Sequence record: NC_070936.1
Length of the DNA stretch: 64,000 bases
Reading direction: 5' to 3' (one strand)
Under the pieces are notes generated by a model that did not search any database, was not told where the DNA came from, and saw only the letters and a list, made by a program, of their open reading frames with translations. Made by a program: the position numbers and the translations under genes. Shown here one piece after another: positions 3,540 through 43,635 of this stretch (its first letter is position 1; the number at the start of each line of letters is the position of its first letter).

Positions 3540-3562
3540 TTCGTAAAACAAAACTAAGATAG

Positions 3563-3592
3563 GGAATAGATGGGGGAAACCCTGTCTATTCC
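3563..3592 (+). terminator. intrinsic terminator
   Basis: GGAATAGATGGG-GAAA-CCCTGTCTATTCC stem followed by T-rich tract. Confidence 0.75.
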
Positions 3593-3675
3593 TACTTTGT
3601 TGTCTATTTGCAAAGTCTGAAAATACCGAGCCTAATTGCTCCGTTAAAATCACGCTTATTAAGGAAATATTTTAA

Positions 3676-24900: not shown

Positions 24901-26557
24901 TAACATCAATAGTCTTAGGTGTGATTACAACAAGATCATTACCACTAATAAGTAGCTTCTTGTTATATTTGTAAACACGATTCTCAGGAGCAGGTCCCGT
25001 GATATCCGCAGTTACAAGTATCTCACCATTATTACCATTGGTGATGGCATTGATGACAAAACTACCATCGAGATTTTTAGATGGAGCAGAGGCACTAGTT
25101 AATGGTCCAGTTGCTTTAAAGTTAGAAATAGTGTTGCCGGAGAACTTGTTTTCACCTTGTTCCTTGATACCGATGATGACATAGTTATCACCTTTATTAT
25201 TCAACTTCTCAAATGGCATTGCATAAGAATCATAACTACCTTCTGGAACAGGAATAGAGAGTTCTTGGCAAGCGACCGGAGTGACGCCATAGATAGGACC
25301 GTTGTAGTACCTTGGACAACCCAGCACGCCACTGGCTATAACCAATTTTTGTTCAACACCAGTGGTAGTTATTTCCTGGATATATCTATTTAGTTGATCT
25401 GGGGTTAACCCAGTTATATCAATTGTGGTTATTGTAGTGTTATTAGAAGCCACACGTAATGAGGCAAATCCAGAAATAAATTTAGCACCTTCAGTGATCC
25501 AATAAGACCAATTCACCCCAGCTGCAATGGAAGCTGTAAACATGGCCTTTTGTAGAGAATTGGGAACTAGATCTTTGATCGATGTTAACAGAATGGCTTT
25601 GGGTTCCTGACCAACATCCAATAATGCAACCCCACCATAATCGTAAGTCTGACCAGCTCTACCAAATCTCCATGTGAATCCCAATGATTCGTCAGATGCA
25701 ACTGGACTATCATTAGTTATTACATATCCAATGTACTCTGGTGTAACTTCCGTAATTGAAAATTTAGATGCACCCTTTTGCTTTTTAACTGCTATGTTGA
25801 CTGGACTTATTGTTATACCTTGAGTGTTGAGTGGCGTTATAACCCCACTTAAAGTGATAATGGGATATAATCTACCTTTAGCGTCTTTAGGTCCTTTCGG
25901 GTTACTATCAAACCCGGTTGGGAAAGTCACAAAGAACCCACTCTTAAAAGTCATAAGAATATTAATAGCCGCCCAACCATCACCTTCTTTGGTACTGTCA
26001 TCAGCTTCATTTCTCAATATTCTTATTCTGACAGTTTCACCCAGAGCTTCTGCAGTTGGAGTATAGTAGACTCTGACTGTTAAATTATCAGGGAGTTTCT
26101 CTTGTTTATTAAACTCGGCCTTGCCGTTGAACTCATTAGATCCTGACAGGAACTGAAATTTTGTATTACTTAAAGGCTGACCTTGATATTTGGCTTGAAT
26201 ATCAAAGTAGCTTTGCTGGTTGGGAACACCAGTAATAATTCTACCATTATTGGTAATGATTGTTGCTTCTAACGTACCTTTTGGATACGCCTTTATATTG
26301 ACCTTACTCTCTGCTTCCAGGGAGTAGGTCTGTCCTAAGTCTTCGACGTCAAACTTGAATACTGCGTCGACCAAGGTATCTTTATCTTGGTCGGCATTAA
26401 TTACTGTGAAAGTATCGTTATCATTAGCTTTGAAGAAGGGGACCGGAGTCCCCCCTTTTACATCAACTTCTTTTAACTTGATATTCTCAGTAATGTCAGT
26501 ACCAGTTTGGACGCTTCTAACCCTGAATGGAACTACAGCTGACTGTTTGTTATCCAC
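21938..26557 (-). CDS. large Ig-like repeat virion/fibre protein (chain member B, 1539 aa)
   Basis: VKVWDQLDAVPFSVVLAGTDVT-type repeats; GTG start with AAGGA RBS. Confidence 0.75.
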   Translation of the reverse strand: MDNKQSAVVPFRVRSVQTGTDITENIKLKEVDVKGGTPVPFFKANDNDTFTVINADQDKDTLVDAVFKFDVEDLGQTYSLEAESKVNIKAYPKGTLEATIITNNGRIITGVPNQQSYFDIQAKYQGQPLSNTKFQFLSGSNEFNGKAEFNKQEKLPDNLTVRVYYTPTAEALGETVRIRILRNEADDSTKEGDGWAAINILMTFKSGFFVTFPTGFDSNPKGPKDAKGRLYPIITLSGVITPLNTQGITISPVNIAVKKQKGASKFSITEVTPEYIGYVITNDSPVASDESLGFTWRFGRAGQTYDYGGVALLDVGQEPKAILLTSIKDLVPNSLQKAMFTASIAAGVNWSYWITEGAKFISGFASLRVASNNTTITTIDITGLTPDQLNRYIQEITTTGVEQKLVIASGVLGCPRYYNGPIYGVTPVACQELSIPVPEGSYDSYAMPFEKLNNKGDNYVIIGIKEQGENKFSGNTISNFKATGPLTSASAPSKNLDGSFVINAITNGNNGEILVTADITGPAPENRVYKYNKKLLISGNDLVVITPKTIDVKVWDQLDAVPFSVVLAGTDVTSEIRNVKLIPNEYIIVDPEDPTKWTVDTAPNAGASKSTFFTFEVNVGGNWKPKVAYGTYRIAAWSGKALEIETDGIIGASPLKETTYVIKPKYKKEPIADRIEVILPTNPGFIVTKLTPSEDNTELTITIKATVVNGSKDVYNPITTVNGIGYKLKDSPGANENIDVVHLNAKLFSNGDYLALYGTIEKVGGPYGALGAFVGSSGTAEVYVYINGERISLNDYNLSVYFLDNGNNISSPSIKANAFSYIGGDDTTLYVRITKPRLNITDTNHQYYSPWAMLYKEGGVNDQYKCVTRNNFWVNPTTSTEAPLLTLYQPGEVKPGIENTIRCRVSNNGTLLEDMKLLTGKLVPVPENCIDTTKEFSVSVDPNDNKYLIIKFTATTVSGNVYVRGGITAKGVTGIPVIADGLAIPKATLIAEPIDTEFNGVEGAETEMKFKVTLTGKPVTGVVVSKGGIATGGAPASAKDFKEIGDGVYSVVVVGGGHEGKGFVTFFLSDGTTENQVPLEPIYGVIDSSNFKLDLTPTDISGKKGDRITLTGSLTNGETNFKFDDSSVAWSFDPADTISKVSVTADTMVVQIDKEVPYDQVVPVKVQVSSKGLKTETTINVTLTGALVVTVLEPKVDVWFSTANPPLKFMLGDKDVTSSVNAISFVETSLVKHNGLKGGYQIISDKAIPTTKQNVSYTYKYAADTPEVNVEVPFTINEYDGKELVLTAEVPPNYRGESGEWIMYSGGFSSMQFSGKLRGVPVGALDFVSMPVGSGYCTPSGAMTYDNASGRSTMRFDFAKVGVAYTEVIVNLKLKGTPNNEIITNVNGGPARFRLTLVDSNKPFIVSDTVPGRVTGKLGDEMPMEIIAYYNDKQVALNDPKVTISKPTDPRIEIVPGSITKNGLKLRFTEDTDVTYIGNNVGLTITYVDPKNVKQTANTSFSFQHVPFYEKLEMVDGFQTSGEGTDTIVLTQAVKNPTK

Positions 26558-26578: not shown

Positions 26579-29500
26579 TTAACGAGGAGAAATGACTTTG
26601 AATGGTGCAGCGTAAGACTTGCTGTATTCAACGTCTATCTGTGTGATATCGGTCACATATGGCGTAGTCGGAGAAGCTGACTGCGTTAACGTGATGTCTA
26701 CAATATATTCACTTCTTCCTTTATAAGTGAACTTCAACTTGAACTTATGAATAACTTCTTCAGTAGAGTCGTTAGTGAATTTGTATCCGATAGTCTTATC
26801 ACTGAGAGTCCCGATGGTAACTGCTGGGTAATCAACGATTTGAATAATCAAATTCTCATCGGTGTTAGCCAATGCGGTCGAACCAAGGAGCACACTCTGA
26901 ATAAGAGTAGGTAACTCATAGTAGTTACCAGTTCCAGTAGTTTGGAAACCACTAGCCGGAGTGAGTTCCGTAGGTAGGATTTCAACCTTAGGTCTCAGGT
27001 CAATATAGTCAGAACCAATGTTACCGTTACCAGTATCATGGACAGACTTCAATCTGATCTTCAGGTCTCCATTACCAACATTCCCACCTGTTACTTTAAT
27101 TACTAAAGTCCCATCGCTACCTGGGCTCATGTTACCAAAGGTAATCAATCCAGCAGGAATAGAAATACTGCTTGACTTATCGAAAGTAACATTACCAACT
27201 AAAGGCTCGCCAGAGTAATCGCCTTTGATAGTGATGAATCCTTGTTCACCTGTCATCAGGATTACGTCATCAGCCGTTGCATTAATCTCTTTTCCGTTAT
27301 AACCATAAACAGTGAAAGTAACTTCTTGTTTGATGGTAAATGTAACGTTGTCCAGAGTAATATCAACTTCGAAGGTAGGCATTACTTTAGTAGTCTGAAC
27401 ATCAGCGTGACTAATTACCCATCCTTTATCTTTGATGCTCACGTATGAGTTATCAGAGATTCTCACGGCAGAAATCTGATCAGTTACATCATTACCTTTC
27501 CAATCCAATTTGAATGGCAGAGGTCCGCTCTCATTAATATGAGCAGTGATTTCTGATGTCAGATTAGTTACAGTTGGTTTAGGAACCGTAGATACCTGAG
27601 TAACTTTGAATGGTATTTTCAACTGACGGTCTGGCGGAATGTTAGTATCTTTATTCCAAGCCGCTACCACATCTGAGGTAAGTTCCCCAACATCAATGTC
27701 ATTAGCGAACTTAAACTGGAAGTATCCACCTGCGATGTAAGTTGTCGTCACAACGTTAGGTGTAAATACTGCCCTGTTAAAGTCTGTGGATAGGATACGA
27801 GCTTCATCAATGCCTTTCCTGTACTTGACATCCATTCTCATCACAGGCCCGCCAAACTGACCAGTAAACTCTTCTGGGTCGGCAGAGATCAGATAATAGC
27901 CATCGACATAGTACGTTTGAACTGGAACTTTCACATAAGTGAAATCCACGCCTTCCACTGCATCAGGGAGATACATTCTGGATTTAAGACCAACACAGAG
28001 GTAACCTTCTTGAGGTTCCTTCATATCAGTCGCTAGCGCTTGCCAGTTAAAGTAAATGTTTTTGGAGTTATTATCAGGACCTTGGTTATAGATGTTTTCA
28101 GCAAACCCTGGGAGCTTAGAACGAGCGGAGTCTATTTCAAATAGGCTATAATCGCTAATAGCTACTTTACGATATTCGCCTGAAACAGTACCGCGGAATA
28201 TAGCATTCGTTTGACCCATTATCCCGTTATTAAACTGGCTAGGGTTATTAAACTTAAAGCTCAGGGCTTGACCATCATACCCTTCGATGTTGAATACAAC
28301 ATCCTGTTCAATTTCCCAAACACGAGGACCCTGAACGACCGTAACAATAAATGTACCAGTCTTGGTAGTTGCTTCAGGTTCACCATCAATAACAGTATAG
28401 CCATCAGTGAGTTTAGGACCCATCTCCAACCAATCTTTATCTTTATCAGCTGCTTTGATATTAGTAACTGAAGAAGTATCGGCCGGATAATCCACACCAT
28501 CAATAGCTAGTTTAAATGGCAGACCTGTGTTCTTTTTCCAAACGCTCGTGTTAACTTCTTGAACATCTGTAACTGTAAGAACTGGATCTGTCGCACCTTC
28601 TTTAGCTTTGAAGATGATAGGTTGATCGTAACTAAAGGTATACTCTTTATTGTTGTTAGGGTTTTTGAATCTGATATTAAAAGTGAAGTAACTTGTAACA
28701 TCAGTAGCGCCAGGTTTAACAGCAGCTGGACTAATTTTGTAAGACTTAGCGGTCCAGTTGAATCGATTAGTCCCCTGAACATTAGATGCCCCAAAGAGTG
28801 TTGCGATACCTAGGTCGTGTGTTAGACCAACCGAGATAACTTCATTGGTTAGGTTGAGATTAACAGCAAGAGCACCCCAAACTAAATCGCACGGGACATC
28901 GACCACTGTCGTACTTCCGGCAGGGACAATGATAGGCTCAGGTACGAATCCTTCCCTGAAGGTAATTTTATCTTCGAACATATTCCAGATAACTGGCATG
29001 TTATCGAAGTTTTTACCAGGAGTGCCGGCAGGGTAACCGTTAGGTCCATTAGCCTCAGTACCATTATACTGTAATGGGACTTTACCTTTGTATTTACCCA
29101 ACTTGTCAGGTATCACCCTAACACTCACCTCATTGGCATTACTACCACCGCCAGAAGTCCAATGTATGGCTGTTGGATCTTCCGACTCAATACGGTTGAT
29201 TGTTGAATATCCAGACCGGTTTGTTCCAATAGGGTATGTTTTATTTTTCAACATTGCCCTAAAGAAGAAAGTGTAGAAGTTATTAGTGAAAGGTATGTTG
29301 ATAACGAAGCCATCACCTTCTTCCGTAATAACTGGTGCACTAACACCATTCTTGTTTACCGGTTCGCCCCAGAACTCAATCCCATCCCAAGCTGAGATAT
29401 TAACAGTTATCTTACCAGTAAGAACAACATTACCAGTAGATGCAGGAGTCGAGTATGTGAATTCTACTTCTACCGTCTTAGGTGTTGGGTCCGCATTTAT

Positions 29501-32500
29501 ACACTGTACAGTTGCACTTGGACCAGCTTCAAAGTAATTTGAACTGATCGCAGTGATACTACATTGTGTAGTAATATCGGTTTCACCACTAAAGACTTTG
29601 AATGGAGTGAATTTACCCCAAATATCGACATCCACAGGGTCGGTATTAGGTTCTAATCTCGGACCTTGGAAAGCCTTAAGTTGAACCTTACCACGTTGGT
29701 GCAGGTCATTGGTTCCATCATAACCCACGACATCCCAGACAAAGTTAAATACAGCAAAGAACGAATTAAGCCCTTTGTATTTAACCACCAGTTCATCTCC
29801 ATCAGGTTCGACAGAAAGAACTTCGAAGAAGGCGCTATTCTGAGTTTGTTCTTGATTCAATGTCAGAGCCGTAGTAGGTAAACCGCGGTTAGTCATTTTG
29901 AATCTCAACTCACCTTCTTTATCTTTGGTAAGTTCAAATGGATTCGGCGCGCCGGTACCTTGGATCCATCCAGCATGAGTAGGTCTAGAAGCTACTAGTG
30001 TTGTTAATTCTACATCAGGTATCTGTATCGTGGACCCTCTAAATGGAACCTCAATAACCCATGAAGTTCTAACATTATGGTTTCCGGTATTCCCGATGTA
30101 GTTATCAATACACCACATCCAGTCCTTGTTAGGATTTTCATCATCAGGAATGATGAGAATGCCTTGGGCGTCAGCATCCAATGTTTCCATACTCACTGGA
30201 GTACATTGAGTAGTTAGATCGGTACCGCCAACCATCACTTTAAAGATCTGAGGACCTCTAACCCTGTTGAATGGTTCAACACTAACTCTGATTGGTGTGA
30301 TTACCGGATAATCCGCAGGGACGACAATCTCAAATGGCTGAGTGTATTCACCAGTATGGGTTGTTCCAGTATTTGGGTCTGTATAACTCAAGGAAACTTT
30401 AATTTCCCGTTTACCCAATTCAGCATCGATAGGTGCGATGACCTCATACTGATACTGAGTTTGGTTAGATCCAGTGATCTTAATAATATCATCAGGATCA
30501 AGAGTTATTTTCAAGTCAGGGTTATCAAGTAGTATATTACGACCTCTGAGAGTGACTCTTAAAGGCATGTTACCTTTATCACCATTCCCGCCCTTAAGAC
30601 CAGCATTCCAACCAGTTACCAATAATGGAGGTTGTTTGAAATCCGCACCAATAACCAGACTACACCAATCCAGGAACTCAACACCAGGTTTAGCTCCACC
30701 AGGTCTTCTCAAGATGAGTTTGATATCACCTTTAAATTCCTTAGTAGGAGTTACACTATATCTGGCTCGCGCCTCAGACCCACCACCGATTGGACCAGTG
30801 AACTCAATATCCATCGCGTCACGGAAATCAGTTTCCAAATAGTCAATTATGTCAGTGTTGTTAAAGTTAGGGATTAACTTGTAAACAGTCTGCATATCAA
30901 CAGTTGTTACATCTCCCACTTCCATTACTAGAGGGTAGGTGTTATCAGGATAATGTTCAGGTGGATTTCTGTGCATCCAGAAGGACTCTAAAGTTCTCTG
31001 GTTCCAGGCTGCAATGTTGAACACCACATCAGCTTCACCTTTCCATGTCCAGTTACGGTAGATACCGTTATAGATCATTTTCAGTGTGAGTGACTTATTG
31101 GTCTCATCTGCTTTCACTACCGTAAAGCTACGGAGAGAAACAGTGATGTATCCATTAGGTTGTTCTTCATCTAATTCACAGTTCATCCAACCACTTTCAG
31201 CAGGAGCTGGAAGACTAGATGCTGTCAGTGAGACATCTCCACAAGTCGCCGATCCGATACCGAGGGATTGGGTATCAAACATCTTACATGCAACTGGAGA
31301 ACGAGGAACAACTACTACTGGTGCGGAAGTATACAGTTCAGGTATTTCTACTCTTCTGCTGTAATTATTTCCACCATAAGTATATGTGATGTTAATGAAG
31401 TCAGAAACTGTGATTTCACGTCCTGGGGCCACAACGCCTGCAAGAGAGTAATTGAATGATTCAGATTCCCAACTACCGATGCTGAGAACACCAGCGTTAG
31501 GAGAAGCACCTTCACCTTTCTCTACAGTTACCCGCAGACTACCATTAGCCATTTCCTGTTTAGCATCGATAGGAATCCCACCAAACAGAATCTGGAGTTT
31601 GTACTCTCCAGTGTCTCCGTCCTTACCAGTCAGCAGGTTATCACGATCACCGATCTCAACACCCAACTCACCCATAACTTTAGTCGGAACTTTACCAGTC
31701 CAAACGTCATAAGGAGCTGGATCTGTACCAGCAGCAGGAGACCAGAACACCAGGTCCATTTCCCCAAGCCCGGCTTCAACACCTTCAAAGGTCAATACGA
31801 AATCAACTCCATCCATCGAGCTACTAACGTATTTAACAGATTTAGGGAAAGTACTCAATTCAGGTTTGAATGTCGCACTTGCACCTACTTCCTTATCTTT
31901 GTAAATTGGGCGAACCTTCAGGGTATTTTGTTCACCAACAGCTGTTTCCAATTTATTAGGCGTGACGGTACATTTGAATCTAGTTGTATCCTGAGCACCT
32001 TGGATTCGGAATGTCGCATCAAACTCAAGTGACTGAACTTCTGGAACTTCATCTACCTTATACAGAACCTGCATCTTGATAGTCTTATCGCTCTGAACTT
32101 TCTCAGCGCCGATAATTTCCCAGCCACGTGGTGCGATGAACTCGACCCATTGGTTGTCCGGTTCGTTGGTCTTATAACCCTGAACAGTATTTAAAGGGTT
32201 ATCGCCCATTTTAATACCTTGAGTAAATGACCCACGATCCCAAATCTTACCGTTGATTGGATCGTTGTTCGTGATCTCTACTTTACCCATCTGGATACTA
32301 ACCTGGGTAGAAATCGTTCCTTCTTTAGGCGCAGGAGCACCAACTTCATAGGTGACTTTAATATCTTCAGGATAAACAGTCAAGGCTTCACTGACGTTAG
32401 AACGAATGGCCTGAATAACAACACCATTGCTAACTCCACCCACGATACGAATCGAGTGTGCTTTGCCATTATCTACCAGTTCATATTTCAGCCCTGGTGT

Positions 32501-35500
32501 ATTACCAGGAATTCCATATTCCCCATATTTAAGGGCCAGTACGATGGTTGCTGTTTCCATCCAAGGAATCGTAATCGCTGGGGTTTTGGATTCAACAGTA
32601 AAGACTTCATCAGAAGACTGAGTGATAACTTTAACTACGGCAACTGCATAGTCATCATTGACAACTGGCGGATTGGTAGCATTCTCTCTCACGAATACTA
32701 ATCTGAGAGTGTCTTCTGCTTGACCCAACAATGTGTAAGGTACATCACCATCTGGAGTGATCTCACCCAGTACGATGTTTTTAGGTATAGTACTCTTACC
32801 TAAATCAATACTTACATTCTTGGCAACATCACCGGCATACTTAAAGCGGAACTTCATTGTTCCAGGTGTACCAGCTTTACCTTCAACTTCTTCTGGACCT
32901 TCAGTGATAACGAATTTCTTACCGTCATATTTGGCGATATTGAAATCGGTTTCAGTATCCATCTGGTAGGTATTCCCACCCATGGAGTATTGAGCAGAAA
33001 GTCTCAGAGTGGTAGTAATGGAAGTAGATTGGCTACCGCCAGTAACGTACCATTTATTTGGTTCAGTGAAAGTGATATACGGGTTAGTTCCACGAGGAGT
33101 CAGACTTTCGATTGGAACAGGTCGACCTTGATCATCAACCAAAGTAATTCCAACGACGCCGCGATCCCATACGTTAACGTTAAATGAAGGGTTAGCTCCA
33201 ATTCTAACATCAGGAATATGGATGACTACCGGTACGGTATTTTCATTGGTCCAGGTTTTTCCATTAGGGTCAACGTACTCGACATTGATTTTGAAATCAT
33301 AGTCGTAGTCTTCGCCTTTCTCCCCACCTTTAGCAAGTTTAACAGTCAAGGACTCGTCATTGATCTTAACAAGTTCTACTGGCTCGCCATCACCTGAAGT
33401 GGCAGTGAGTTTTAACTTAGGATCATTCAGGGTTAATGGAATACCATCCCAGTTATAGACTAACTCGATAGTTGCTTCGGCATTCCAGATGCCTTTAACA
33501 GAAGGAGTGATCTTAACTAGGTTCAGTTCATGGGGCCATGCAATCTCAGTCGGAATATCAGCCTGGATCGTTCTACCACTTGGTGTGTGGCGATAGATCA
33601 GGGTCATTAAGTAATCACCACCACGAGTGGTTTCGTACCCAATAACTACACCTTCACCATCCACGTTAGAACTTACACCCATGATGAAAGTTTCTGGGAT
33701 AGTGGAAGCAGCTTTATCCACAACTACATCAGCGTTAGCCGGTTTACCTTTATAAACAAAGTTACCCGTTATTGTACCATTAGTTCTGGAATCTGCTTTG
33801 ATAGACTTAGGTTCCCAATCACCGCCGAAAGTGATCTGGTCCCAAGGCTCCAAATTAAAGACAACTTCAGTAATGAACTTGCGATCTTTAGCTTTGCCTA
33901 CGGTCCATTTAATTTCTAACGGAATCGTAATGGTGGTTGCTTCTTTCTCAGCCCAAATCACTTCCCAGTTAAGTTTATTGAAAGCAATATACTCATTATC
34001 CTGGATAGATTTGACGCTAGTAATCGCACCAGTCCAGTTGGTATTACCAGCCATGAGAGTGAAAGGCAATAGTCCAGTATCCCAAATAGCTGCATCGATA
34101 GGTGCGGCTGGGGTACCTTCTAAACGCATTTCTGGATATACAGTGAAGACAGGTAAAGTGAACTTAACGTTAGTTTGTTTACCGTCTCTTGGGTCTGTAT
34201 AGATGTACTCTAATTCCAAACCAGATTGACGAGTCTCACCGATGTATTCCCAAACGTTGTCAACAACCTCGACACCATTGTCTTTAACGTCAACGATACG
34301 GACGTTAGATTTGTCAGTACGCTTATACGTTAAGTTAGGATCGGTCAGTGGAACGACTTTACCAGCAAAGGTCAGAGTGATCTTAGCTAATGCTGAAGAA
34401 CCACCTACTTCAACTGTGGTTTCTTTATCGTAATCCTTAAGTACCAGTACACGAGACTGTTTAACGTCAGTGCTAACGTGAACAAGTGCGATATCTTCAG
34501 GTTTAGGATCTTCGATACCAGGGCGTTGAATATAAACTTTACCAGGCTCAGTAGTAGGTTGAAGTTTACTGTAGTTGGCACGAATAACATTTCGTTCTTC
34601 TATATAAACGAAAGAGTTGAAAGTAATCCCTGCTGGGGTTACTAACTTATCTTTCATTATTTCTGCTGTGGCGGTAATGTCTTCTGACAAGTGGTATACT
34701 TGGAATTCAAAGTAACCTGTTTCATCAGACAGACCGTCGATCAGTGCAGAAGAAGGAACGGCTACAGTTTTGGTGTTAATCCCAGGTTCTGTTGTACCAG
34801 GATCTTGTTCCCAAGCATTAACATTGAAAGTTTGATCGTAAGTAAACTGACGCCAAACACCATCAATAGTGTAACGGAACTTAAATGGAACTGTGGTGCT
34901 TTCTGCCGGAGCAGGAACATCTGGAGCATTACCAACGAACCATTGATCCGCATTACCTTTCTTAGGAATGATGAAACCTTTCTCATCTTCAAAAGTATAA
35001 TCACTAATTTTCTTAGTGACATCAACGCCGTTCACAATCAGTTTAAATGGATAGTCACCAAACTGATACTTATTAACCACGAGAGGGTTAGAGAGAACAG
35101 GAACCAGTTCAACTGTGGAGACCTGCGCTACAATTACACGGACCTTACGAGTGATGACGTATCTTACACCAGTTGGCGCAATCCAACGGAATACTTGATC
35201 ATAGTCATCTTCAATTTCTTCGCCGGGTTTGTTGGCGTCTTTGATGATGGTGTAATTAACACCTAACTGATCAACTGAATTATATTCGATCAGTTCTTTC
35301 TCACCTTTCTTACCTGTGCGGATATCAAGATCGGTAGGAGAAATAGGTTCATCATTATAAAAAGCACCAACAGTCAAAAGACCTTTATCGCCTTTATGAC
35401 CACGGATAACAGCTGGGAAACTACGAATCTCAAACTTAGGACCGGTATCTGGACGAGTAAGAACTACGTTCACATACGCCGGAGCTTTAGAAGTAATATC

Positions 35501-36706
35501 ACCTTCGTTATATACAAACTCAGCGGTATAGAGCCCACCGACTTGTTCAACGGTGTTCGGGAAGTTAGTGCTTAAATGACCTTCATAGATCATCGCGTCA
35601 TTTTCATCCCAGGTAGTAAACTTCATTGCACCGAAGTTACCTTGCTGGAGTAACGCAGATGGAGGAGCACTAATTCTTACCTTATTGCCTTTATAGAAAG
35701 CAGTGATCTTAACCTGTACATCTGAACCTGATGGCGCGGTAACGGTTTCTGGATCAATTACGAAAGTAAGATCGAAACTGTTATCCTTTTCGATAACCAC
35801 ATTGATTCTGAACGTTTTCTTAACAGGTCGACCTTGCCACATATAAGTGACACGCACGATGATCTCATCACGGACTTCTTTTTCAGAAGAACCATAAATG
35901 GTTTCACCAATGATGAAGTTTCCGTCTTCAGAACGTTTAGGAATGGTGTAACCAGAACCAGTACTGATTTCGATCAAAGCTTCATGTGTGATGTCAATAG
36001 TGGTGTTGAACCAATAGGTATTTGGAATACTGAAGTCTTTACCACGCTGGGTCGTAATGGACTCAGGAAGGTTAGAAGTAATTCCAGGAACATTGGCTTC
36101 ATCCAGAACTAATTCATAAATGAATAGTGGATAGGTTCCAGTACCAAATGAAGCATCAGTGATTTTAACTGTACCTGATTCGAGAGTATCGTAATCAATG
36201 AAAGTTAAAGATTCACGAGAGGTAACGTATTCATTAAAGAACAAATCACCAAAGGCAGCCATTGGACCACTGATGGTTTTTGCTTCTTCTTGAGAAAGCA
36301 GAACACCATAGTTATTAAGCCACTTACACCACAGTAAACCGTGATCTACTTTGTTGGCTTTAACGTAAGCTTTCAAGTTATCCAGGTCTTCGATCTCGAT
36401 CAATGGAACGGCGAAGTCTTCCAGGATATCTTTCATTTGTACACGAGTGATGTCGACGTCAACACGTGCAAAACCGGTTTTGCGCGCTGTAAAGCAAACG
36501 CGAGTAATACCATCAGGGAAAGCAACTGGGTTCTCAATAACTAAGTCACCAGCAACCAAACCTGTGTAACGTTCTTTAGCTAACGCCAACTCATCTTCAG
36601 GTCCTTCAACCTCAAGACGTTTTATACGTTCTTTCAAGAAACGTTCTACTGGTGTGTATAACGGATCGTTAATACACTTTTTGTTAATCTTAATTTGCTC
36701 TGCCAT
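26579..36706 (-). CDS. giant Ig-like repeat virion/fibre protein (chain member A, 3375 aa)
   Basis: Uninterrupted 10.1-kb ORF; alternating repeats (W..G.LPF.L..G..D.T and P..+.G..G..G.+...YKG); distinct N-terminal domain of about 190 aa. Confidence 0.8.
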   Translation of the reverse strand: MAEQIKINKKCINDPLYTPVERFLKERIKRLEVEGPEDELALAKERYTGLVAGDLVIENPVAFPDGITRVCFTARKTGFARVDVDITRVQMKDILEDFAVPLIEIEDLDNLKAYVKANKVDHGLLWCKWLNNYGVLLSQEEAKTISGPMAAFGDLFFNEYVTSRESLTFIDYDTLESGTVKITDASFGTGTYPLFIYELVLDEANVPGITSNLPESITTQRGKDFSIPNTYWFNTTIDITHEALIEISTGSGYTIPKRSEDGNFIIGETIYGSSEKEVRDEIIVRVTYMWQGRPVKKTFRINVVIEKDNSFDLTFVIDPETVTAPSGSDVQVKITAFYKGNKVRISAPPSALLQQGNFGAMKFTTWDENDAMIYEGHLSTNFPNTVEQVGGLYTAEFVYNEGDITSKAPAYVNVVLTRPDTGPKFEIRSFPAVIRGHKGDKGLLTVGAFYNDEPISPTDLDIRTGKKGEKELIEYNSVDQLGVNYTIIKDANKPGEEIEDDYDQVFRWIAPTGVRYVITRKVRVIVAQVSTVELVPVLSNPLVVNKYQFGDYPFKLIVNGVDVTKKISDYTFEDEKGFIIPKKGNADQWFVGNAPDVPAPAESTTVPFKFRYTIDGVWRQFTYDQTFNVNAWEQDPGTTEPGINTKTVAVPSSALIDGLSDETGYFEFQVYHLSEDITATAEIMKDKLVTPAGITFNSFVYIEERNVIRANYSKLQPTTEPGKVYIQRPGIEDPKPEDIALVHVSTDVKQSRVLVLKDYDKETTVEVGGSSALAKITLTFAGKVVPLTDPNLTYKRTDKSNVRIVDVKDNGVEVVDNVWEYIGETRQSGLELEYIYTDPRDGKQTNVKFTLPVFTVYPEMRLEGTPAAPIDAAIWDTGLLPFTLMAGNTNWTGAITSVKSIQDNEYIAFNKLNWEVIWAEKEATTITIPLEIKWTVGKAKDRKFITEVVFNLEPWDQITFGGDWEPKSIKADSRTNGTITGNFVYKGKPANADVVVDKAASTIPETFIMGVSSNVDGEGVVIGYETTRGGDYLMTLIYRHTPSGRTIQADIPTEIAWPHELNLVKITPSVKGIWNAEATIELVYNWDGIPLTLNDPKLKLTATSGDGEPVELVKINDESLTVKLAKGGEKGEDYDYDFKINVEYVDPNGKTWTNENTVPVVIHIPDVRIGANPSFNVNVWDRGVVGITLVDDQGRPVPIESLTPRGTNPYITFTEPNKWYVTGGSQSTSITTTLRLSAQYSMGGNTYQMDTETDFNIAKYDGKKFVITEGPEEVEGKAGTPGTMKFRFKYAGDVAKNVSIDLGKSTIPKNIVLGEITPDGDVPYTLLGQAEDTLRLVFVRENATNPPVVNDDYAVAVVKVITQSSDEVFTVESKTPAITIPWMETATIVLALKYGEYGIPGNTPGLKYELVDNGKAHSIRIVGGVSNGVVIQAIRSNVSEALTVYPEDIKVTYEVGAPAPKEGTISTQVSIQMGKVEITNNDPINGKIWDRGSFTQGIKMGDNPLNTVQGYKTNEPDNQWVEFIAPRGWEIIGAEKVQSDKTIKMQVLYKVDEVPEVQSLEFDATFRIQGAQDTTRFKCTVTPNKLETAVGEQNTLKVRPIYKDKEVGASATFKPELSTFPKSVKYVSSSMDGVDFVLTFEGVEAGLGEMDLVFWSPAAGTDPAPYDVWTGKVPTKVMGELGVEIGDRDNLLTGKDGDTGEYKLQILFGGIPIDAKQEMANGSLRVTVEKGEGASPNAGVLSIGSWESESFNYSLAGVVAPGREITVSDFINITYTYGGNNYSRRVEIPELYTSAPVVVVPRSPVACKMFDTQSLGIGSATCGDVSLTASSLPAPAESGWMNCELDEEQPNGYITVSLRSFTVVKADETNKSLTLKMIYNGIYRNWTWKGEADVVFNIAAWNQRTLESFWMHRNPPEHYPDNTYPLVMEVGDVTTVDMQTVYKLIPNFNNTDIIDYLETDFRDAMDIEFTGPIGGGSEARARYSVTPTKEFKGDIKLILRRPGGAKPGVEFLDWCSLVIGADFKQPPLLVTGWNAGLKGGNGDKGNMPLRVTLRGRNILLDNPDLKITLDPDDIIKITGSNQTQYQYEVIAPIDAELGKREIKVSLSYTDPNTGTTHTGEYTQPFEIVVPADYPVITPIRVSVEPFNRVRGPQIFKVMVGGTDLTTQCTPVSMETLDADAQGILIIPDDENPNKDWMWCIDNYIGNTGNHNVRTSWVIEVPFRGSTIQIPDVELTTLVASRPTHAGWIQGTGAPNPFELTKDKEGELRFKMTNRGLPTTALTLNQEQTQNSAFFEVLSVEPDGDELVVKYKGLNSFFAVFNFVWDVVGYDGTNDLHQRGKVQLKAFQGPRLEPNTDPVDVDIWGKFTPFKVFSGETDITTQCSITAISSNYFEAGPSATVQCINADPTPKTVEVEFTYSTPASTGNVVLTGKITVNISAWDGIEFWGEPVNKNGVSAPVITEEGDGFVINIPFTNNFYTFFFRAMLKNKTYPIGTNRSGYSTINRIESEDPTAIHWTSGGGSNANEVSVRVIPDKLGKYKGKVPLQYNGTEANGPNGYPAGTPGKNFDNMPVIWNMFEDKITFREGFVPEPIIVPAGSTTVVDVPCDLVWGALAVNLNLTNEVISVGLTHDLGIATLFGASNVQGTNRFNWTAKSYKISPAAVKPGATDVTSYFTFNIRFKNPNNNKEYTFSYDQPIIFKAKEGATDPVLTVTDVQEVNTSVWKKNTGLPFKLAIDGVDYPADTSSVTNIKAADKDKDWLEMGPKLTDGYTVIDGEPEATTKTGTFIVTVVQGPRVWEIEQDVVFNIEGYDGQALSFKFNNPSQFNNGIMGQTNAIFRGTVSGEYRKVAISDYSLFEIDSARSKLPGFAENIYNQGPDNNSKNIYFNWQALATDMKEPQEGYLCVGLKSRMYLPDAVEGVDFTYVKVPVQTYYVDGYYLISADPEEFTGQFGGPVMRMDVKYRKGIDEARILSTDFNRAVFTPNVVTTTYIAGGYFQFKFANDIDVGELTSDVVAAWNKDTNIPPDRQLKIPFKVTQVSTVPKPTVTNLTSEITAHINESGPLPFKLDWKGNDVTDQISAVRISDNSYVSIKDKGWVISHADVQTTKVMPTFEVDITLDNVTFTIKQEVTFTVYGYNGKEINATADDVILMTGEQGFITIKGDYSGEPLVGNVTFDKSSSISIPAGLITFGNMSPGSDGTLVIKVTGGNVGNGDLKIRLKSVHDTGNGNIGSDYIDLRPKVEILPTELTPASGFQTTGTGNYYELPTLIQSVLLGSTALANTDENLIIQIVDYPAVTIGTLSDKTIGYKFTNDSTEEVIHKFKLKFTYKGRSEYIVDITLTQSASPTTPYVTDITQIDVEYSKSYAAPFKVISPR

Positions 36707-36819: not shown

Positions 36820-39636
36820 TTATTTAGTTTTCAAATCAATAACTAATGGATAGTAAAGTGGGTCAGGTGAAGGGAATCTGAATTTAGCATCTGCATAATA
36901 AGAAGTTCTTCTTTTCTTATCTGCAATAACCTCAACATATCCAATACCTGTTTGACGGTCATAAATAAGATCGATTGTTCTTACTTTCGTGTTGATATTG
37001 TTCTTGAAGAAATCATCAATACGAATGAACTTAGGATTCTTACCACTGGCATCTTTAAACTGCCACTTGTAAACTAATGTTCCCGACTTGGTAAACTCAT
37101 GACCTAAATAAGAAGCTGTTGCTGCAGGAGCATAATACTGCTGTCCTGTTTTAGCTTCGACAGTTAGCGAAGTACCAATCACTCTCACTTCAAAATTCAC
37201 ATCGAAAGGCATAACACCATTAACATCTTTCAATGGGAGTGTGTGGGTAATGATACCAGTTTTATCATTATAAATGAAGTTACTGGCTTCTTTGGTAAGA
37301 TTGTTTATTTTAACACCGGCACTAGAAGGTCGAGTCGATCTCAGTTGGTAACTAAGAACTAAGTCGCCATTCTTAAGTTCATAACCTAAGTACTCAACGT
37401 TAACTTTCAGTTTAGGTTCTTCAGTGTGAAGTAATTTGAACCATTGATCGTGAACACCATCCTCAGTTTCTATTCTGAGTTTAATATCCAGTCCGTAGTT
37501 TAGCTTGGCGTCCTGGTTATATTCACAATCAACGGCAAAGTTGAGATTACCAGTTTCTGGATCATAGCTTTCAGAACGACGGAGGTTTGAGATCCCCTTT
37601 ACATTCTCACCCAAAACAACAGAAGTTATTTTAACAGAAGGTGGGATTTCCCCGTTCTTAAGTATGACACCTAAGTTAAAGTTAAGTGAGTTCTTAATCA
37701 CACTAATGGCGTTAGTTTTCAATGAAACCGGAAATGAATCAGACCCGAATGTAGTAGACGATTCGAAATCGTATTCTGGGTTATCTCTGTAACCAGCCAG
37801 GTAGACCTTTCCTTTAAGGGTATGGGTTTCTTTGAAGCCGGTGGTTTCTACTTTGGTCAATATAGTCAATCGACCATTATGATAACCAGATTTAATGATT
37901 CCAGTGGATTTACCATTAACTTCAACTTTATTACTAACCATTACCATATTGGCAGGCGATGAGCCATCTTCAAACTTAGGTTCGAATACAGCCTTTTCAA
38001 TACCACCAATGACGGTATGTTCAATCACAGTAAAATCAATCTTACCTTCATCGGTAGGGATATTAATGTAATCCACAGTCTTGATATGAAGTGGTATTTT
38101 TCTTAGCACATTAGTTTTCACTAAAGCAGTACCAATCAACTCTACTTCTACAGCTTCTTCTTTCTGTTCATTCAGAATAAAGAATCCATTAACAATGTTG
38201 GGGTTCGTATCGTGTTTTTGAACGACATTGTTACTAGAAGGAATACGGTTGATCAACAAGCACAGTGAAGTGGCATCGATAGACACTATCTTCTCATTAG
38301 AAACCAGTGAGAAACTATAATCCATTCTGTCGGATTCATTTCTTATAATCGCCTCATTAAAGATGGCAATTGGTTTAGCCGTAGCTTCAACAAACCAAGG
38401 AACCATTTTATTATCGATAATGAAATGACCACGAAGGTTATAATGAAGTTCTCTACTGTTATCCACTACGACTTCCCAGGTAGCGATAAATTCATTACTA
38501 CCTTCAATCCAATTCAATCTTGGAGCAGCTGACCCGATTAAATGACTAACGAAGTCTGCTGGAGGAACGTGTAGATTCTGGAGAAGATAATTGGAATCTT
38601 CCTTTGAGGTTACCTTAAACCGAGCTTGAAGTGTATTATCTCCTAAGGTGGTAGAGATTAATTCTGCCTTATATGTAGATTGATGGTCATAATCCACAGA
38701 CAGATTAAAATCGATAGGTGGATAATTTTCACCTTTGGCTTTGGTAATAAAATTGTAATTCAACGTACCTTCTGGGATAACCCCCACCACTATATCGAAC
38801 TCGTATAGACCAGTGCGAGGATCGTAATTGATACTGTTAGGTTTTACAATACCAGTTGGAACATTATTGCCATATAGGAAAGGTGTCTCAAGAGAGAATG
38901 AACTCGGTGGTAGATTGGTATCAGCCCACTTAACTTCCATCATTACACGCAATGTTCTTTCTTTGAGAACTTTACTAATAACTTTATAGTTGATTGTTTT
39001 AGTTCTTTCTAGTCGACCATTGAAAGAAACTACAGTTCCAGGTTGGTCAGGTAAGGATCTTACTTCCGAACTATATTCCATATCAGCATACATAGCTCTG
39101 CTCTTAGCCTGGTAGGTCGCCACCAATATACCATCGATAGGATTATAAGTTTGCGTTAGTACTTTGTTACTAATCAGGTTACCTGTTGGCTTAGCTTCAT
39201 TATCCAAGCAGGCGAACTCAGGGATCTTCCCATTGGTTCTTTCTACTTTTAATGTCACTATCAGTTTATCGTCATGGAATCTAAATGAGGACGACTTGAT
39301 TAGTAAAGCCGGTTCTGGGATTCTGAGTTCTTCAGAATGTTCAAAAGGTGTTGAATATTTCTCACCTTCTATGATGTAACTTCCTTTGACTTTAAAAGGA
39401 ACATCCACATCTGGGTTTGTTTCCGGTTCTACTTTGAACACTGTTCTGTAAGTACCGGTATTTAAATCGTAACCTTGAGAAACCGGATCACCATCTAAAC
39501 CAATTACATTATTAAGGAAAACCCGTTTAGGATAACCACCCCTTGTATAACGAACAACGTGTTCTATAACTAGGTGATCAAACCCTTCTCTTTTTATTCC
39601 TCCACTAAGATATATAGTGGTTGGGTGATCGATCAT
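36820..39636 (-). CDS. beta-rich repeat protein, probable virion structural protein (938 aa)
   Basis: Repeats of about 100 aa with Y(D/N)P.TG motif (YDLNTG, YNPIDG, YDPRTG, YDPETG, YNDKTG, YDRQTG); GGAGG RBS. Confidence 0.7.
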   Translation of the reverse strand: MIDHPTTIYLSGGIKREGFDHLVIEHVVRYTRGGYPKRVFLNNVIGLDGDPVSQGYDLNTGTYRTVFKVEPETNPDVDVPFKVKGSYIIEGEKYSTPFEHSEELRIPEPALLIKSSSFRFHDDKLIVTLKVERTNGKIPEFACLDNEAKPTGNLISNKVLTQTYNPIDGILVATYQAKSRAMYADMEYSSEVRSLPDQPGTVVSFNGRLERTKTINYKVISKVLKERTLRVMMEVKWADTNLPPSSFSLETPFLYGNNVPTGIVKPNSINYDPRTGLYEFDIVVGVIPEGTLNYNFITKAKGENYPPIDFNLSVDYDHQSTYKAELISTTLGDNTLQARFKVTSKEDSNYLLQNLHVPPADFVSHLIGSAAPRLNWIEGSNEFIATWEVVVDNSRELHYNLRGHFIIDNKMVPWFVEATAKPIAIFNEAIIRNESDRMDYSFSLVSNEKIVSIDATSLCLLINRIPSSNNVVQKHDTNPNIVNGFFILNEQKEEAVEVELIGTALVKTNVLRKIPLHIKTVDYINIPTDEGKIDFTVIEHTVIGGIEKAVFEPKFEDGSSPANMVMVSNKVEVNGKSTGIIKSGYHNGRLTILTKVETTGFKETHTLKGKVYLAGYRDNPEYDFESSTTFGSDSFPVSLKTNAISVIKNSLNFNLGVILKNGEIPPSVKITSVVLGENVKGISNLRRSESYDPETGNLNFAVDCEYNQDAKLNYGLDIKLRIETEDGVHDQWFKLLHTEEPKLKVNVEYLGYELKNGDLVLSYQLRSTRPSSAGVKINNLTKEASNFIYNDKTGIITHTLPLKDVNGVMPFDVNFEVRVIGTSLTVEAKTGQQYYAPAATASYLGHEFTKSGTLVYKWQFKDASGKNPKFIRIDDFFKNNINTKVRTIDLIYDRQTGIGYVEVIADKKRRTSYYADAKFRFPSPDPLYYPLVIDLKTK

Positions 39637-39661
39637 ACTTCCTCCGATATCGATACTGTTT

Positions 39662-39673
39662 GGACATAGAATC
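39662..39673 (-). promoter_or_regulatory. putative late promoter (GATTCTATGTCC)
   Basis: Identical to 19686-19697; follows terminator 39681-39706. Confidence 0.5.
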
Positions 39674-39680
39674 TGATAAA

Positions 39681-39706
39681 GAGTCCCTGGACGAACCCAG
39701 GGACTC
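39681..39706 (-). terminator. intrinsic terminator
   Basis: GAGTCCCTGG-ACGAAC-CCAGGGACTC. Confidence 0.75.
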
Positions 39707-39714
39707 TAATATCA

Positions 39715-40452
39715 TTAAGGTTCTATAACTAACGTGGTTCTGACACTACGTGAGCTGCATTTAACATCGGCATTACTAAACCATACTTCATAGTTAGTGC
39801 TGCTTTTGTTAGCAACATATGTGGTAAAGGTCACTGTTTTCTCATCAATGATCTTAGCGTCTCTGATCCAGTTAAATGTATTGGATCTCCCAGCAGCCTC
39901 ACTATACGTATAGTCTCGTTGTACAACCAACTTGTCTGATGTTATACCATCCTCAGGAAGTTTGACTGTCCACACCCCCAGGTTTCTTTCTTTGTCATAG
40001 ACAACTGAAACTTCGCCTGGGCCAACAGGAATATAATCGAATTCTGTTCTAGACGTATACTCAACACCGTCAGCTAATATAACTATATTAGTGGCCGCGC
40101 TATCTGGCTTATTGACGATATTTATATGAGCACGCAGACTGGTTTCTCCAAAGAGACCGTTTTCTCTCTTCCTTATTTTTAACGGACCAGTACCGCCCCA
40201 GATACCGGGCTCAAATCCTTTTACTTCCCACTCATTAATATAGGTAGTATTCCCTTTCTCATCAATGACTCTGAATGTTCCAAGTACTGAAGATTTGACC
40301 ATGTTATCCCATTCGGTAACTAGTTGGTTACCTCCTGTATACCCATAGCGCTGTTCAAATAAGATTGCAGGTCTACCCATATAACCATTGACCGCTCCAA
40401 ATGAAAATAATAACTGTTTTAAGTCAACAATGTGACCATAGGATCCGAACAT
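39715..40452 (-). CDS. beta-rich hypothetical protein, probable structural protein
   Basis: 245-aa ORF; true start may be ATG 40380 (MGRPAIL) because 40452 abuts a terminator with no RBS. Confidence 0.65.
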   Translation of the reverse strand: MFGSYGHIVDLKQLLFSFGAVNGYMGRPAILFEQRYGYTGGNQLVTEWDNMVKSSVLGTFRVIDEKGNTTYINEWEVKGFEPGIWGGTGPLKIRKRENGLFGETSLRAHINIVNKPDSAATNIVILADGVEYTSRTEFDYIPVGPGEVSVVYDKERNLGVWTVKLPEDGITSDKLVVQRDYTYSEAAGRSNTFNWIRDAKIIDEKTVTFTTYVANKSSTNYEVWFSNADVKCSSRSVRTTLVIEP

Positions 40453-40453
40453 A

Positions 40454-40481
40454 GAGTAGGGTGGCTTCGGCCACCCTACTC
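40454..40481 (-). terminator. intrinsic terminator
   Basis: GAGTAGGGTGGC-TTCG-GCCACCCTACTC. Confidence 0.8.
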
Positions 40482-40494
40482 ATTATGATCTTAA

Positions 40495-40563
40495 TTAAAG
40501 TTCGAAGTCATTGAATGCGCCTTCTGCAACATTGGAATCGATTTGACCTACCAGGTAAGAACT
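40495..40563 (-). repeat. duplicated nrdB 3' end (22 codons plus stop)
   Basis: [22 protein letters not shown] is collinear with nrd[23 protein letters not shown] at 41344-41412. Confidence 0.9.
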
Positions 40564-41292
40564 AACCAAAGATTGTTTATCATGGGAGAAAGCCCAGCCA
40601 TTAACAATCTTCTTTCCATTAGATTTTAGAGCACGCCCTATCGATCTCCTAGATATTCCCAAGATTCCAGCACATTCATGGCTCGATTTGAATAACACGA
40701 GTTCAGTCCTGTCACTTATCTCAAGACCATAGAACATTTTACTTGTTCTGGTTCCGCTGTTATTAACTGAAAGTCCCTCTAATGTTATTTTCCATGTGTG
40801 GTCTAATAAAGTATCTTTATATTTATTGACAATCATTGTGCCTGAGACATTGGGAGTTCCAGCCCATCTTGATAGTTCTCGCAGAGAGTGTAGAGTGATG
40901 ACTTTTCCTGTCTTTACATTCTCTATCTTTATATGTTGGCTTGCTTTATTAAGTCCTGTCTTATATGCATGGAAGATGTTATCTGAATTGGTAGTCCATT
41001 CAAGATTGCTCTTAGTGCAGTCTAATTTATTACCATTAATGTGATTACAAGTTATTAGTTTGCAACCTTCTGGAAGATCTGGCCTTGGGCCATTAAATAT
41101 GGAACACACGGTGACATGAATAGTTATATAAGCCTGAACACCATAATCAGAGACGAGATTAACTGAACGATATCCATTACGGAGAAGGTCTTTCATTTTA
41201 AATTGGTCTTTCTTTCTCCTAACATCACCATTTTCATTTATCTCATAATTAGAGAACCCAGGTATGATTATCCAATTATCTTTATTATCCAT
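40495..41292 (-). CDS. free-standing HNH homing endonuclease (NUMOD4-HNH-NUMOD1-like) ending in an NrdB-like tail
   Basis: W..IPGFSNYEINENGDVRR (NUMOD4); NHINGNKLD..SNLEWTT..DN (HNH); FKSSHECAGILGISRRSI (NUMOD1-like); GAGG RBS before ATG 41292. Confidence 0.9.
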   Translation of the reverse strand: MDNKDNWIIIPGFSNYEINENGDVRRKKDQFKMKDLLRNGYRSVNLVSDYGVQAYITIHVTVCSIFNGPRPDLPEGCKLITCNHINGNKLDCTKSNLEWTTNSDNIFHAYKTGLNKASQHIKIENVKTGKVITLHSLRELSRWAGTPNVSGTMIVNKYKDTLLDHTWKITLEGLSVNNSGTRTSKMFYGLEISDRTELVLFKSSHECAGILGISRRSIGRALKSNGKKIVNGWAFSHDKQSLVSSYLVGQIDSNVAEGAFNDFEL

Positions 41293-41304
41293 GAATACCT
41301 CATG

Positions 41305-41332
41305 CCCCATTTACCCAATTGGGTAAATGGGG
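41305..41332 (-). promoter_or_regulatory. hairpin between nrdB and the HNH gene
   Basis: Perfect palindrome CCCCATTTACCC-AATT-GGGTAAATGGGG, 3 nt from the HNH RBS. Confidence 0.6.
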
Positions 41333-41343
41333 ATGTTGTTTAT

Positions 41344-42477
41344 TTACAGACTAAAATCCGCAAAGTCATCAGTGTCGACTGTTGAATCAATTTGCCCCAC
41401 AAGATAGGAGCTGATCTCAGCCTCCTGTGGGGCCACCTGAACGTTGTCAGACACCAACCAGGAGTTAATCCATGGGATTGGGTTAGTGGTAGTTGTAAAT
41501 GGCATACCGAGCCCGATAGCGTTCATACGGATGTTCGCAATGTATTCAACATACTGGCACAGGATCGGCTCTGACAGACCAATCATAGAACCATCTTTAA
41601 ACAGGTATGCTGCCCATTCTTTTTCTTGCTGTACAACTTCCAAGAACATGTCGATTGATTCTTGTTTGCATTCTTCAGCAATTTCAGCCATCTCTGGATC
41701 ATCAGCACCATTTGCAAACAGATTCAGGATATGCTGAGTGCCAGTAAGGTGGAGAGCCTCATCACGTGCGATGAGTTTGATGATCTTAGCATTACCTTCC
41801 ATCAGCTTACGTTCTGCGAATGCAAACGAGCAAGCGAATGATACATAGAAACGAATAGCTTCCAGGGCGTTAACTGATTGAATACACAGATAAAGCGCTT
41901 TCTTAATCTCACGCAGGGTAACGACAACACGTTTACCATTAACAGTGTGAGTACCTTCACCCAGGTAATAATACTGCTGGGTTAAAGCAATCAGTTTATC
42001 GTAGTAACGGGACACCGCACCAGCACGACGGGTGATGTGTTCGTTATCCACAACATCTTCAAACACGATAGAAGGATCGTTAACGATGTTACGGATGATG
42101 TGGGTATAGGAACGAGAGTGAATCGTTTCTGAGAAGCCCCAGGTCTCTGCCCATGTTTCCAGTTCTGGAATACTGATAATCGGAAGGAAGGCTACGTTAG
42201 GCCCACGACCCTGTACGGAATCCAGAAGCGTCTGATATTTGAGGTTACTGATGAAGATATGCTTTTCATGTTCCGGAAGGTTCATGTAGTCAATACGGTC
42301 ACGAGTAACGTCAACTTCTTCAGGACGCCAGAAGAAAGACAGTTGCTTTTCAATAAGCTTTTCAAAGATACCGTGCTTTTGTTGGTCATAACGAGAAACG
42401 TTAACGTTCTGACCCATGAACATGTGTTCTAACAGTTGGTTGTTTTTATTTTGGTTAAAAGTTGAATAGCCGGACAT
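41344..42477 (-). CDS. nrdB: ribonucleotide reductase class Ia beta subunit
   Basis: [58 protein letters not shown]; start at ATG 42477 after GGAG. Confidence 0.97.
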
Positions 42478-42701
42478 GTTTAACTCCAAGTAAGATTTGT
42501 TTAAGATGTTTGCACTTAGCTAATAATTATTACTCGGATAAAAGATTAAAGTTAGGCTAAAATAAATTCTTAATGAAAGACACTATCATACGTTAACTTA
42601 AACATGTTTTCACCGAAAGGTGGGAGGGAAAGGGTGGATATGTTTATATAGCGATTACGTAGTAATCATCCTTTAAAGTCTTTGGCCTTTGGTTCCAAAT
42701 C

Positions 42702-42727
42702 TTTTCAGGTAGATATTATTAAAGTGA
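42702..42727 (+). promoter_or_regulatory. putative phage early promoter
   Basis: TTTTCAGGTAGATATTATTAAAGTGA. Confidence 0.55.
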
Positions 42728-42780
42728 AGTTAGTACCTTAATTTAAATTTGTTGTGTGTTAAACTTTTGAAGGATTTAAA

Positions 42781-43635
42781 ATGAAAACTATTTTAGCTAT
42801 TGTAATTATGCTGTTTTCTCTTTCTTCTTTTGCTGAGGTTGATTACAGTAAAGAAGCGATGGATGCTCGTTGTGGTGATGGCCAGGAAATGATCTATTGG
42901 AATAAGATCGCTAAGACAGGTGCCGAAGTTAAAGTGTGCTTGAATGGGGATATGGTTTCTGGTGGCTTCTATATGCCTGATGGTGATGATATGGTTTACA
43001 CCTCACCATTGATACTAACCCATGTTCAAGTAACCAAAGACTATGAAGCAGTGATCGTTCAGAACTTACCTATGGCTTTCCGCTTCCAGCATAAGTATGA
43101 TGGTCGTGCTGATTATGCATACTTATTCGACATGGGTACAGAATCTGAAAACTCCCGACCTGTTGCTCTGGATCCTACCTTAGCGTATTCTAATATCATT
43201 GGACTGCGTGAAGCTAAACGTGGAACCTTCAGTATCGACCCTGTAAAGCCTGTAGAGAAGAAAGTTAAGACTACCCAGGAGAATACTCAGATCAAAACTT
43301 CTGATGCGGTAGGTGATCGCTGTGCTCCTGGTGATATCGTATTCTACGGTAAAACTGTGAAGGGTAATAAAGAAGTACTGGTTTGTCGTTGGAATGATAA
43401 TGTCTTTTATCGCTTTGGTAAAATCGGTAAGAAACCAGATATGGATTTAAAAGAAGACATTTCTAATATTGGTGTTGCTAACGAACTGGTCAGCATTCCA
43501 AATGGAGATGTTTATTATCACACTGGTTATGAGGATGGGCGTGAAGTTCTGATTGTTTCCCGCGGTAAAGACACATTAGCAACGATCGATCTTGATCAAC
43601 GCAGTGTTGTAAATAATATCAAAGCTTTATTCTAA
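42781..43635 (+). CDS. secreted protein with internally duplicated Cys-containing domain
   Basis: Signal peptide ending SSFA; RCGDGQEMIY..K.....EVKVC and RCAPGDIVFYGK.....EVLVC. Confidence 0.75.
   Translation: MKTILAIVIMLFSLSSFAEVDYSKEAMDARCGDGQEMIYWNKIAKTGAEVKVCLNGDMVSGGFYMPDGDDMVYTSPLILTHVQVTKDYEAVIVQNLPMAFRFQHKYDGRADYAYLFDMGTESENSRPVALDPTLAYSNIIGLREAKRGTFSIDPVKPVEKKVKTTQENTQIKTSDAVGDRCAPGDIVFYGKTVKGNKEVLVCRWNDNVFYRFGKIGKKPDMDLKEDISNIGVANELVSIPNGDVYYHTGYEDGREVLIVSRGKDTLATIDLDQRSVVNNIKALF

Follow-up and report, generated by a model that had tools for sequence, protein, structure and literature searches.

The nrdB locus of Klebsiella phage N1M2

The DNA analysed here, hereafter the window, is a stretch of 64,000 nucleotides from sequence record NC_070936.1. 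It is 100% identical to Klebsiella phage N1M2, and a position in the window equals the record position minus 124000. N1M2 is a 253-kb jumbo phage, the annotation of which includes a nuclear shell protein and a PhuZ tubulin. Our interest lies in two neighbouring minus-strand genes, nrdB, which encodes the beta subunit of a class Ia ribonucleotide reductase (RNR), and an open reading frame (ORF) for an HNH endonuclease (Table 1). With the RefSeq start nrdB covers 41344-42477, while the mechanically called ORF extends to 42489. The HNH ORF covers 40495-41310, although a start at 41292 is likelier than one at 41310, since a GAGG ribosome-binding site precedes it; this is also the choice made in RefSeq.

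Table 1. Features of the nrdB/HNH locus, in window positions.
Feature	Position	Strand	Evidence
nrdB body, class Ia RNR beta subunit, resident, without intron	41413..42477	-	Pfam Ribonuc_red_sm, E = 1.3e-46
Imported replacement NrdB tail, 22 codons and stop, now completing nrdB	41344..41412	-	Identity shift, 17-mer, rare codons
Invariant 17-mer inside the imported tail	41393-41409	-	Common to five HNH-bearing alleles
Cassette hairpin between nrdB stop and HNH start, perfect 12-bp stem, 4-nt loop	41305..41332	-	Folding z-score -4.9
HNH homing endonuclease body, no stop codon of its own	40564..41292	-	Pfam, I-HmuI match
NUMOD4 (~41155-41277), HNH_3 (~40978-41118), then C-terminal helix-turn-helix region	within 40564..41292	-	
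Displaced resident NrdB tail, 22 codons and stop, in-frame C-terminus of the HNH protein	40495..40563	-	Collinearity with HNH-less alleles
Terminator-like hairpin, resident at the nrdB locus; a conserved intergenic motif comes after it	40454..40481	-	Folding z-score -6.6

The terminator-like hairpin that follows the locus is positionally homologous to the hairpin found behind nrdB in the phages Yubaba and Sureiya. On its 3′ side, at 40430-40453, lies a short GGATCCTATGGTCA-like intergenic motif that is kept in the flanks of L001, L003 and L006; in N1M2, unlike Yubaba, the motif is called as the beginning of an ORF, and it may be a regulatory site. Scans for sigma-70 promoters at the locus returned scores at background level. 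Just downstream are two very large minus-strand ORFs of 3375 and 1539 residues (26579-36706 and 21938-26557), and large ORFs likewise lie just downstream of the nrdB/HNH locus in the relatives L005 and L007.

Two NrdB tails

A first-pass annotation, made from the letters of the window, had reported that nrdB and the HNH ORF both end in a copy of the NrdB C-terminal tail. This is confirmed: each finishes in 22 collinear codons and a TAA stop, with coordinates and sequences as described. The two tails agree at 15 of 22 residues, the first ten included, and at 36 of 66 nucleotides. Eight of the ten codons for those identical leading residues differ at the third base, again as reported. The resemblance is not due to chance, because a BLASTP comparison of NrdB with the HNH protein alone gives E = 2e-6 and other phages show the duplication at the same position. 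Alignment to the Escherichia coli sequence also bears out that the tail tyrosine corresponds to Tyr356 of E. coli NrdB. Its equivalent is retained in both N1M2 tails, together with the conserved terminal pattern of hydrophobic and acidic residues. N1M2 NrdB as a whole has 77.9% amino-acid identity to E. coli NrdB; within the tail, nrdB's own (imported) copy matches E. coli at 16 of 22 residues, versus 12 of 22 for the copy fused to the nuclease.

It had further been suggested that the codons of the fused tail are the more phage-typical. This holds weakly, the geometric-mean relative codon frequency over the first ten tail codons being 0.343 for the fused tail and 0.234 for that of nrdB. The latter value is lower than that of every ten-codon window of the nrdB body, i.e. 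the codons of nrdB's own tail are rare for N1M2.

The fused tail is the resident one

Which of the two tails belongs to the phage, and which arrived with the nuclease? Alleles that lack the HNH gene provide the answer. Serratia phage Yubaba and Edwardsiella phage pEt-SU have an nrdB with a single tail and no HNH gene. When the nrdB end and downstream flank of Yubaba and Sureiya are aligned to N1M2, their counterparts are the fused tail, its trailing hairpin and the beginning of the next gene; the fused tail is also of the EGAF type found in these two phages. The nucleotide identity between the nrdB genes of N1M2 and Yubaba drops from 85.4% in the body to 57.6% over the last 66 coding bases. 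Over the same stretches, the identity between N1M2 and the HNH-bearing L005 moves from 76.1% to 80.3%, and the nrdB-linked tails of these two agree at 53 of 66 bases and have the 17-mer in common. The collinearity with HNH-less alleles and these shifts in identity show that the fused tail is the resident one and that the tail of nrdB came with the element.

The junction is especially clear in L006, a near-twin of Yubaba and Sureiya that encodes a homologous nuclease, P0003. All 66 bases of its fused tail are those of the Yubaba tail, and its nrdB, compared with that of Sureiya, switches to foreign sequence inside the Tyr codon.

These comparisons lend good support, through HNH-less alleles and collinear flanks, to the earlier proposal that an element entered the 3′ end of nrdB, supplied a replacement end and became fused to the displaced original end. 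The insertion point, which was to be mapped against HNH-less alleles, falls at the Ser-Ser-Tyr codons. The replacement end had been described as recoded. That it is a replacement is borne out; a divergent donor end, carried along by the element, describes it better than recoding in place.

The nrdB genes of several relatives are interrupted at another site, after codon 238, by a group I intron (L007 4240-4478, L003 ~3042-4001, L006 3503-4459, and L093). The intron of L007 has no ORF and scores 69 bits, over the Rfam threshold; those of Sureiya, L006 and L093 encode a second, different ORF with HNH and helix-turn-helix parts. In GenBank, Sureiya appears with two nrdB genes and a DNA-binding protein. 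Annotation calls for caution on two points, as the fused tail is not a nuclease domain and the split nrdB of the relatives is not two genes.

The nuclease and its family

The HNH motif is recognized by Pfam (HNH_3, 25.6 bits against a cutoff of 24.8), and NUMOD4 gives a weak match of 20.5, under its cutoff of 23.4. The His and Asn residues of the motif are invariant in an alignment of six family members. I-HmuI (1U3E) is the sole significant match among solved structures, both by phmmer (E = 0.0035) and by Foldseek (E = 3.1e-7, probability 1.00). The TM-scores to I-HmuI are modest (0.33 and 0.49) because the domains of the model are loosely packed. The AlphaFold2 model of the HNH protein has a mean pLDDT of 75, and the fused tail is predicted to be disordered, with pLDDT below 50 at residues 248-265, as would be expected of an unbound docking peptide.

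The close family of this nuclease is small, with five representative clusters at E <= 1e-30 among 1.84 billion proteins, and all members with a readable context directly adjoin nrdB. A search of IMG/VR for related loci found distant HNH relatives only, at most 41% identical and over the N-terminal part. At one fixed site the element is present in L006 and missing from Yubaba and Sureiya, and the same nrdB site is occupied in Agricanvirus. The element has moved horizontally: by NrdB similarity N1M2 is nearest to L006, by HNH similarity it is nearest to L005, and a conflict of this kind fits horizontal spread.

Some details of individual loci are useful for curators. The start called for P0003 in L006 (4916-5000) lies too far downstream: beginning at an in-frame ATG further upstream lengthens the gene by 28 codons, which restore the N-terminal strand region of the other family members. 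In Desertfox (L009 2492-3328) a 38%-identical homolog of the nuclease lies upstream of nrdB, not downstream, with no visible duplication of the 5′ end. The Agricanvirus genome paper remarked only on the reversed order of the HNH and RNR genes.

The fate of the displaced tail differs among relatives. The metagenomic homologs P0002 (72% identical) and P0003 (64%) run in frame into an NrdB tail, as does the N1M2 nuclease. These three fused-tail proteins are 62-72% identical, and the tail is intact and in frame in each. No displaced tail lies behind the nuclease genes of the homologs P0004, P0005 and P0014, each of which ends at a stop codon of its own; at L007, L090 and L093, which represent two more distant lineages, the displaced tail is missing. 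The nuclease of Simmy50, an Erwinia phage of the genus Agricanvirus, is 46% identical, continues for about 30 further native residues and has its own stop. A complete displaced tail follows immediately, in another frame. Of its 66 bases, 63 are the same in the nrdB tail of Desertfox, a phage without an HNH gene downstream of nrdB. Two 22-codon tails thus flank the nuclease in N1M2, L005, L006 and Simmy50, whereas, of the best 150 family representatives, only three carry a translated NrdB tail. The cassette of replacement tail, stop, hairpin and I-HmuI-like HNH gene recurs at the same codons in the Erwinia jumbo phages, which are unrelated.

A junction variant travels with the cassette

Across the codons for Ser-Tyr-Leu-Val-Gly, the imported tail carries the 17-mer TCCTATCTTGTGGGGCA, which is invariant in all five HNH-bearing Petsuvirus-like alleles. 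Resident and HNH-less tails vary at this site, where Leu is encoded by CTG or TTG and Gly by GGT, and the more distant cassettes of Simmy50 and L093 have TTA for the Leu of the 17-mer. In the last 139 codons, all five alleles have the same degenerate amino acid at 70 positions but the same codon at only 15 of them; five of these 15 are consecutive and lie at the junction. Estimated from the background rate, the probability of such a run by chance is a few per thousand. A strong hairpin follows the imported stop in every related cassette; its position is kept and its sequence is not.

The exact 17-mer has no match in IMG/VR. Elsewhere it has 30 matches in metagenomes and 19 in genome collections, roughly the number expected by chance, and only one of these, L114, is an nrdB tail. 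L114 (4847-6064) is a bacterial nrdA-nrdB-yfaE operon from a metagenome, with the 17-mer in the tail of its nrdB and no nuclease gene nearby. The match may have arisen by chance or may point to where the variant came from, and is not evidence on the donor.

What might keep these codons constant? Judging from the alleles compared, the synonymous differences at the junction most likely spare the carrier genome from its own nuclease, and it is plausible that the replacement end resists cleavage. Immunity alone, however, has no obvious need for one particular 17-mer, and the junction variant probably marks the recognition core of the enzyme.

A probable mobile cassette with a spare gene end

We interpret the locus, with a probability of roughly 80%, as a mobile homing-endonuclease cassette comprising a replacement nrdB 3′ end, a hairpin and an HNH gene without a stop codon, the tail on the nuclease being a passive by-product. 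In this reading the cassette, whose replacement end brings its own stop, sits where the C-terminal tail of NrdB begins, at the Ser-Ser-Tyr codons, and the cleavage site would be expected there too. The divergent spare tail keeps the essential nrdB gene whole, and the full resident site is rebuilt on neither side of the insertion. The resident tail has been pushed downstream, where the reading frame of the nuclease enters it and makes use of its terminator and stop codon. Within the N1M2 clade the nuclease has lost its native C-terminal stretch and stop, and reads into whichever resident tail follows. The in-frame state is passed on with the cassette and the tail renewed at each invasion. The fusion looks like a by-product of a stop-less cassette because the tail is out of frame or absent in relatives and only three proteins translate it.

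The first-pass annotation offered a different role for the fused tail, namely that it could tether the nuclease to the RNR alpha subunit, NrdA, or inhibit the enzyme, and so link the element to dNTP supply. It might also compete with NrdB for NrdA. We consider such a function unsupported by the comparisons and unlikely. It would agree with the intact, in-frame tails of three homologs that are 62-72% identical, as a functional role would predict the same, and with the preserved Tyr356 equivalent and terminal Phe-x-x-Phe-x-Leu pattern. The partner would have to be the NrdA of the host: no nrdA is annotated in the N1M2 genome, and a tblastn search of the whole genome with E. coli NrdA gave a best E-value of 1.6, so either tail, fused or imported, would dock on the host protein. 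Yet a general role is opposed by the Simmy50 group, where the tail is out of frame, by its absence in L007, L090 and L093, and by its rarity among the best 150 family representatives. The tail of L006 is base-identical to the working tail of a neighbour, and its intactness therefore reflects recent capture; more generally, a cassette without a stop hands down the in-frame state by itself, with no need of selection. Of the two N1M2 tails, the fused one is also the poorer match to E. coli. A degenerate or out-of-frame tail in homologs had been named as evidence against function, and the outcome is split, with out-of-frame tails in the homologs from Erwinia phages and in-frame tails throughout the three-member fused clade. 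That within this clade the captured tail has been exapted as a docking peptide for host NrdA strikes us as quite improbable. If true, the nuclease would be held at the machinery of dNTP synthesis, or the NrdB of the host would be outcompeted in favour of the phage subunit.

Two further accounts of the locus deserve mention. The 3′ end of nrdB might have been duplicated locally in the N1M2 lineage, with the nuclease landing between the copies and the copies diverging in place. The position of the two copies on either side of the nuclease gene agrees with this, but nrdB-linked tails are alike in different phages (the 53 shared bases and common 17-mer of N1M2 and L005), fused tails resemble local HNH-less alleles, and the same arrangement is present in an unrelated genus, which makes a local duplication very unlikely. 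Alternatively, the insert might be an intron or intein whose removal would join the nrdB body to the downstream tail. A group I intron does exist in the nrdB of relatives, at a different site. In N1M2, however, nrdB is a complete gene that has a tail and a stop of its own, and the nuclease is a separate ORF beyond the stop codon and a hairpin; we find this account hardly credible. A search with Rfam for a group I intron found no Intron_gpI match in 39500-43000.

The mobile-cassette reading has some wider implications. The target would be the sequence encoding the radical-transfer tyrosine, which fits the habit of homing elements to aim at codons that are unable to change. With each invasion NrdB would also exchange its last twelve residues, through which it docks on NrdA. 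The NrdB of N1M2 presumably pairs with the NrdA of its host, and since the phage must use this partner, the selfish element would also move a determinant of host interaction between phages.

Comparison with known systems

The nearest relative of known structure, I-HmuI of Bacillus phage SPO1, shares with the N1M2 enzyme an N-terminal strand region and HNH motif followed by DNA-binding modules. I-HmuI is only about 20% identical and is an intron-encoded nicking endonuclease, whereas the N1M2 enzyme is free-standing and longer.

Homing endonucleases are known from other phage RNR genes. MobE of phage T4 is a free-standing HNH homing endonuclease whose gene lies beside nrdB, on its upstream side, and which nicks the 5′ part of nrdB (PMC2790892). 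As in N1M2, an HNH gene adjoins nrdB, and the MobE target is the nrdB codons for a radical-transfer residue; codon polymorphisms also separate carrier from non-carrier alleles, and a terminator limits expression (PMC2790892). Unlike N1M2, T4 has neither a duplicated gene end nor a fusion (PMC2790892), and MobE is not among the listed homologs of the N1M2 nuclease. In Aeromonas phage Aeh1, too, an insertion in an RNR gene (nrdA/mobE) left element-derived coding sequence on a subunit (PMC3045599). That insertion, of mobE, divides nrdA into two parts, and assembly depends on the new tails (PMC3045599), whereas the nrdB of N1M2 is whole, with only its last 22 codons exchanged.

Our literature search found no description of an HNH cassette with a replacement end in phages; the architecture is known from fungal mitochondria. 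There, mobile endonuclease ORFs with a foreign C-terminal gene end have been described for atp6 of Allomyces macrogynus and for atp6, atp9, cox2 and nad3 of Glomus (PMC3630166). As in N1M2, the endonuclease ORF of these hybrids has invaded an essential gene in its 3′ part and brought a divergent replacement end along; downstream is the native end, which matches that of close relatives lacking the element, and the frames are sometimes in phase (PMC3630166). The mitochondrial enzymes are of the LAGLIDADG or GIY-YIG type and belong to organelle genomes (PMC3630166), whereas the N1M2 type is HNH and belongs to jumbo phages; in N1M2, furthermore, a stop and a hairpin part nrdB from the nuclease, and the native end is translated on the nuclease. 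N1M2 is a clean and comparatively well resolved case, from a phage, of a homing endonuclease that gets into the end of an essential coding sequence harmlessly, by bringing a spare end. The same nuclease family uses this solution in two unrelated groups of jumbo phages, and in doing so mirrors the gene hybrids of fungal mitochondria.
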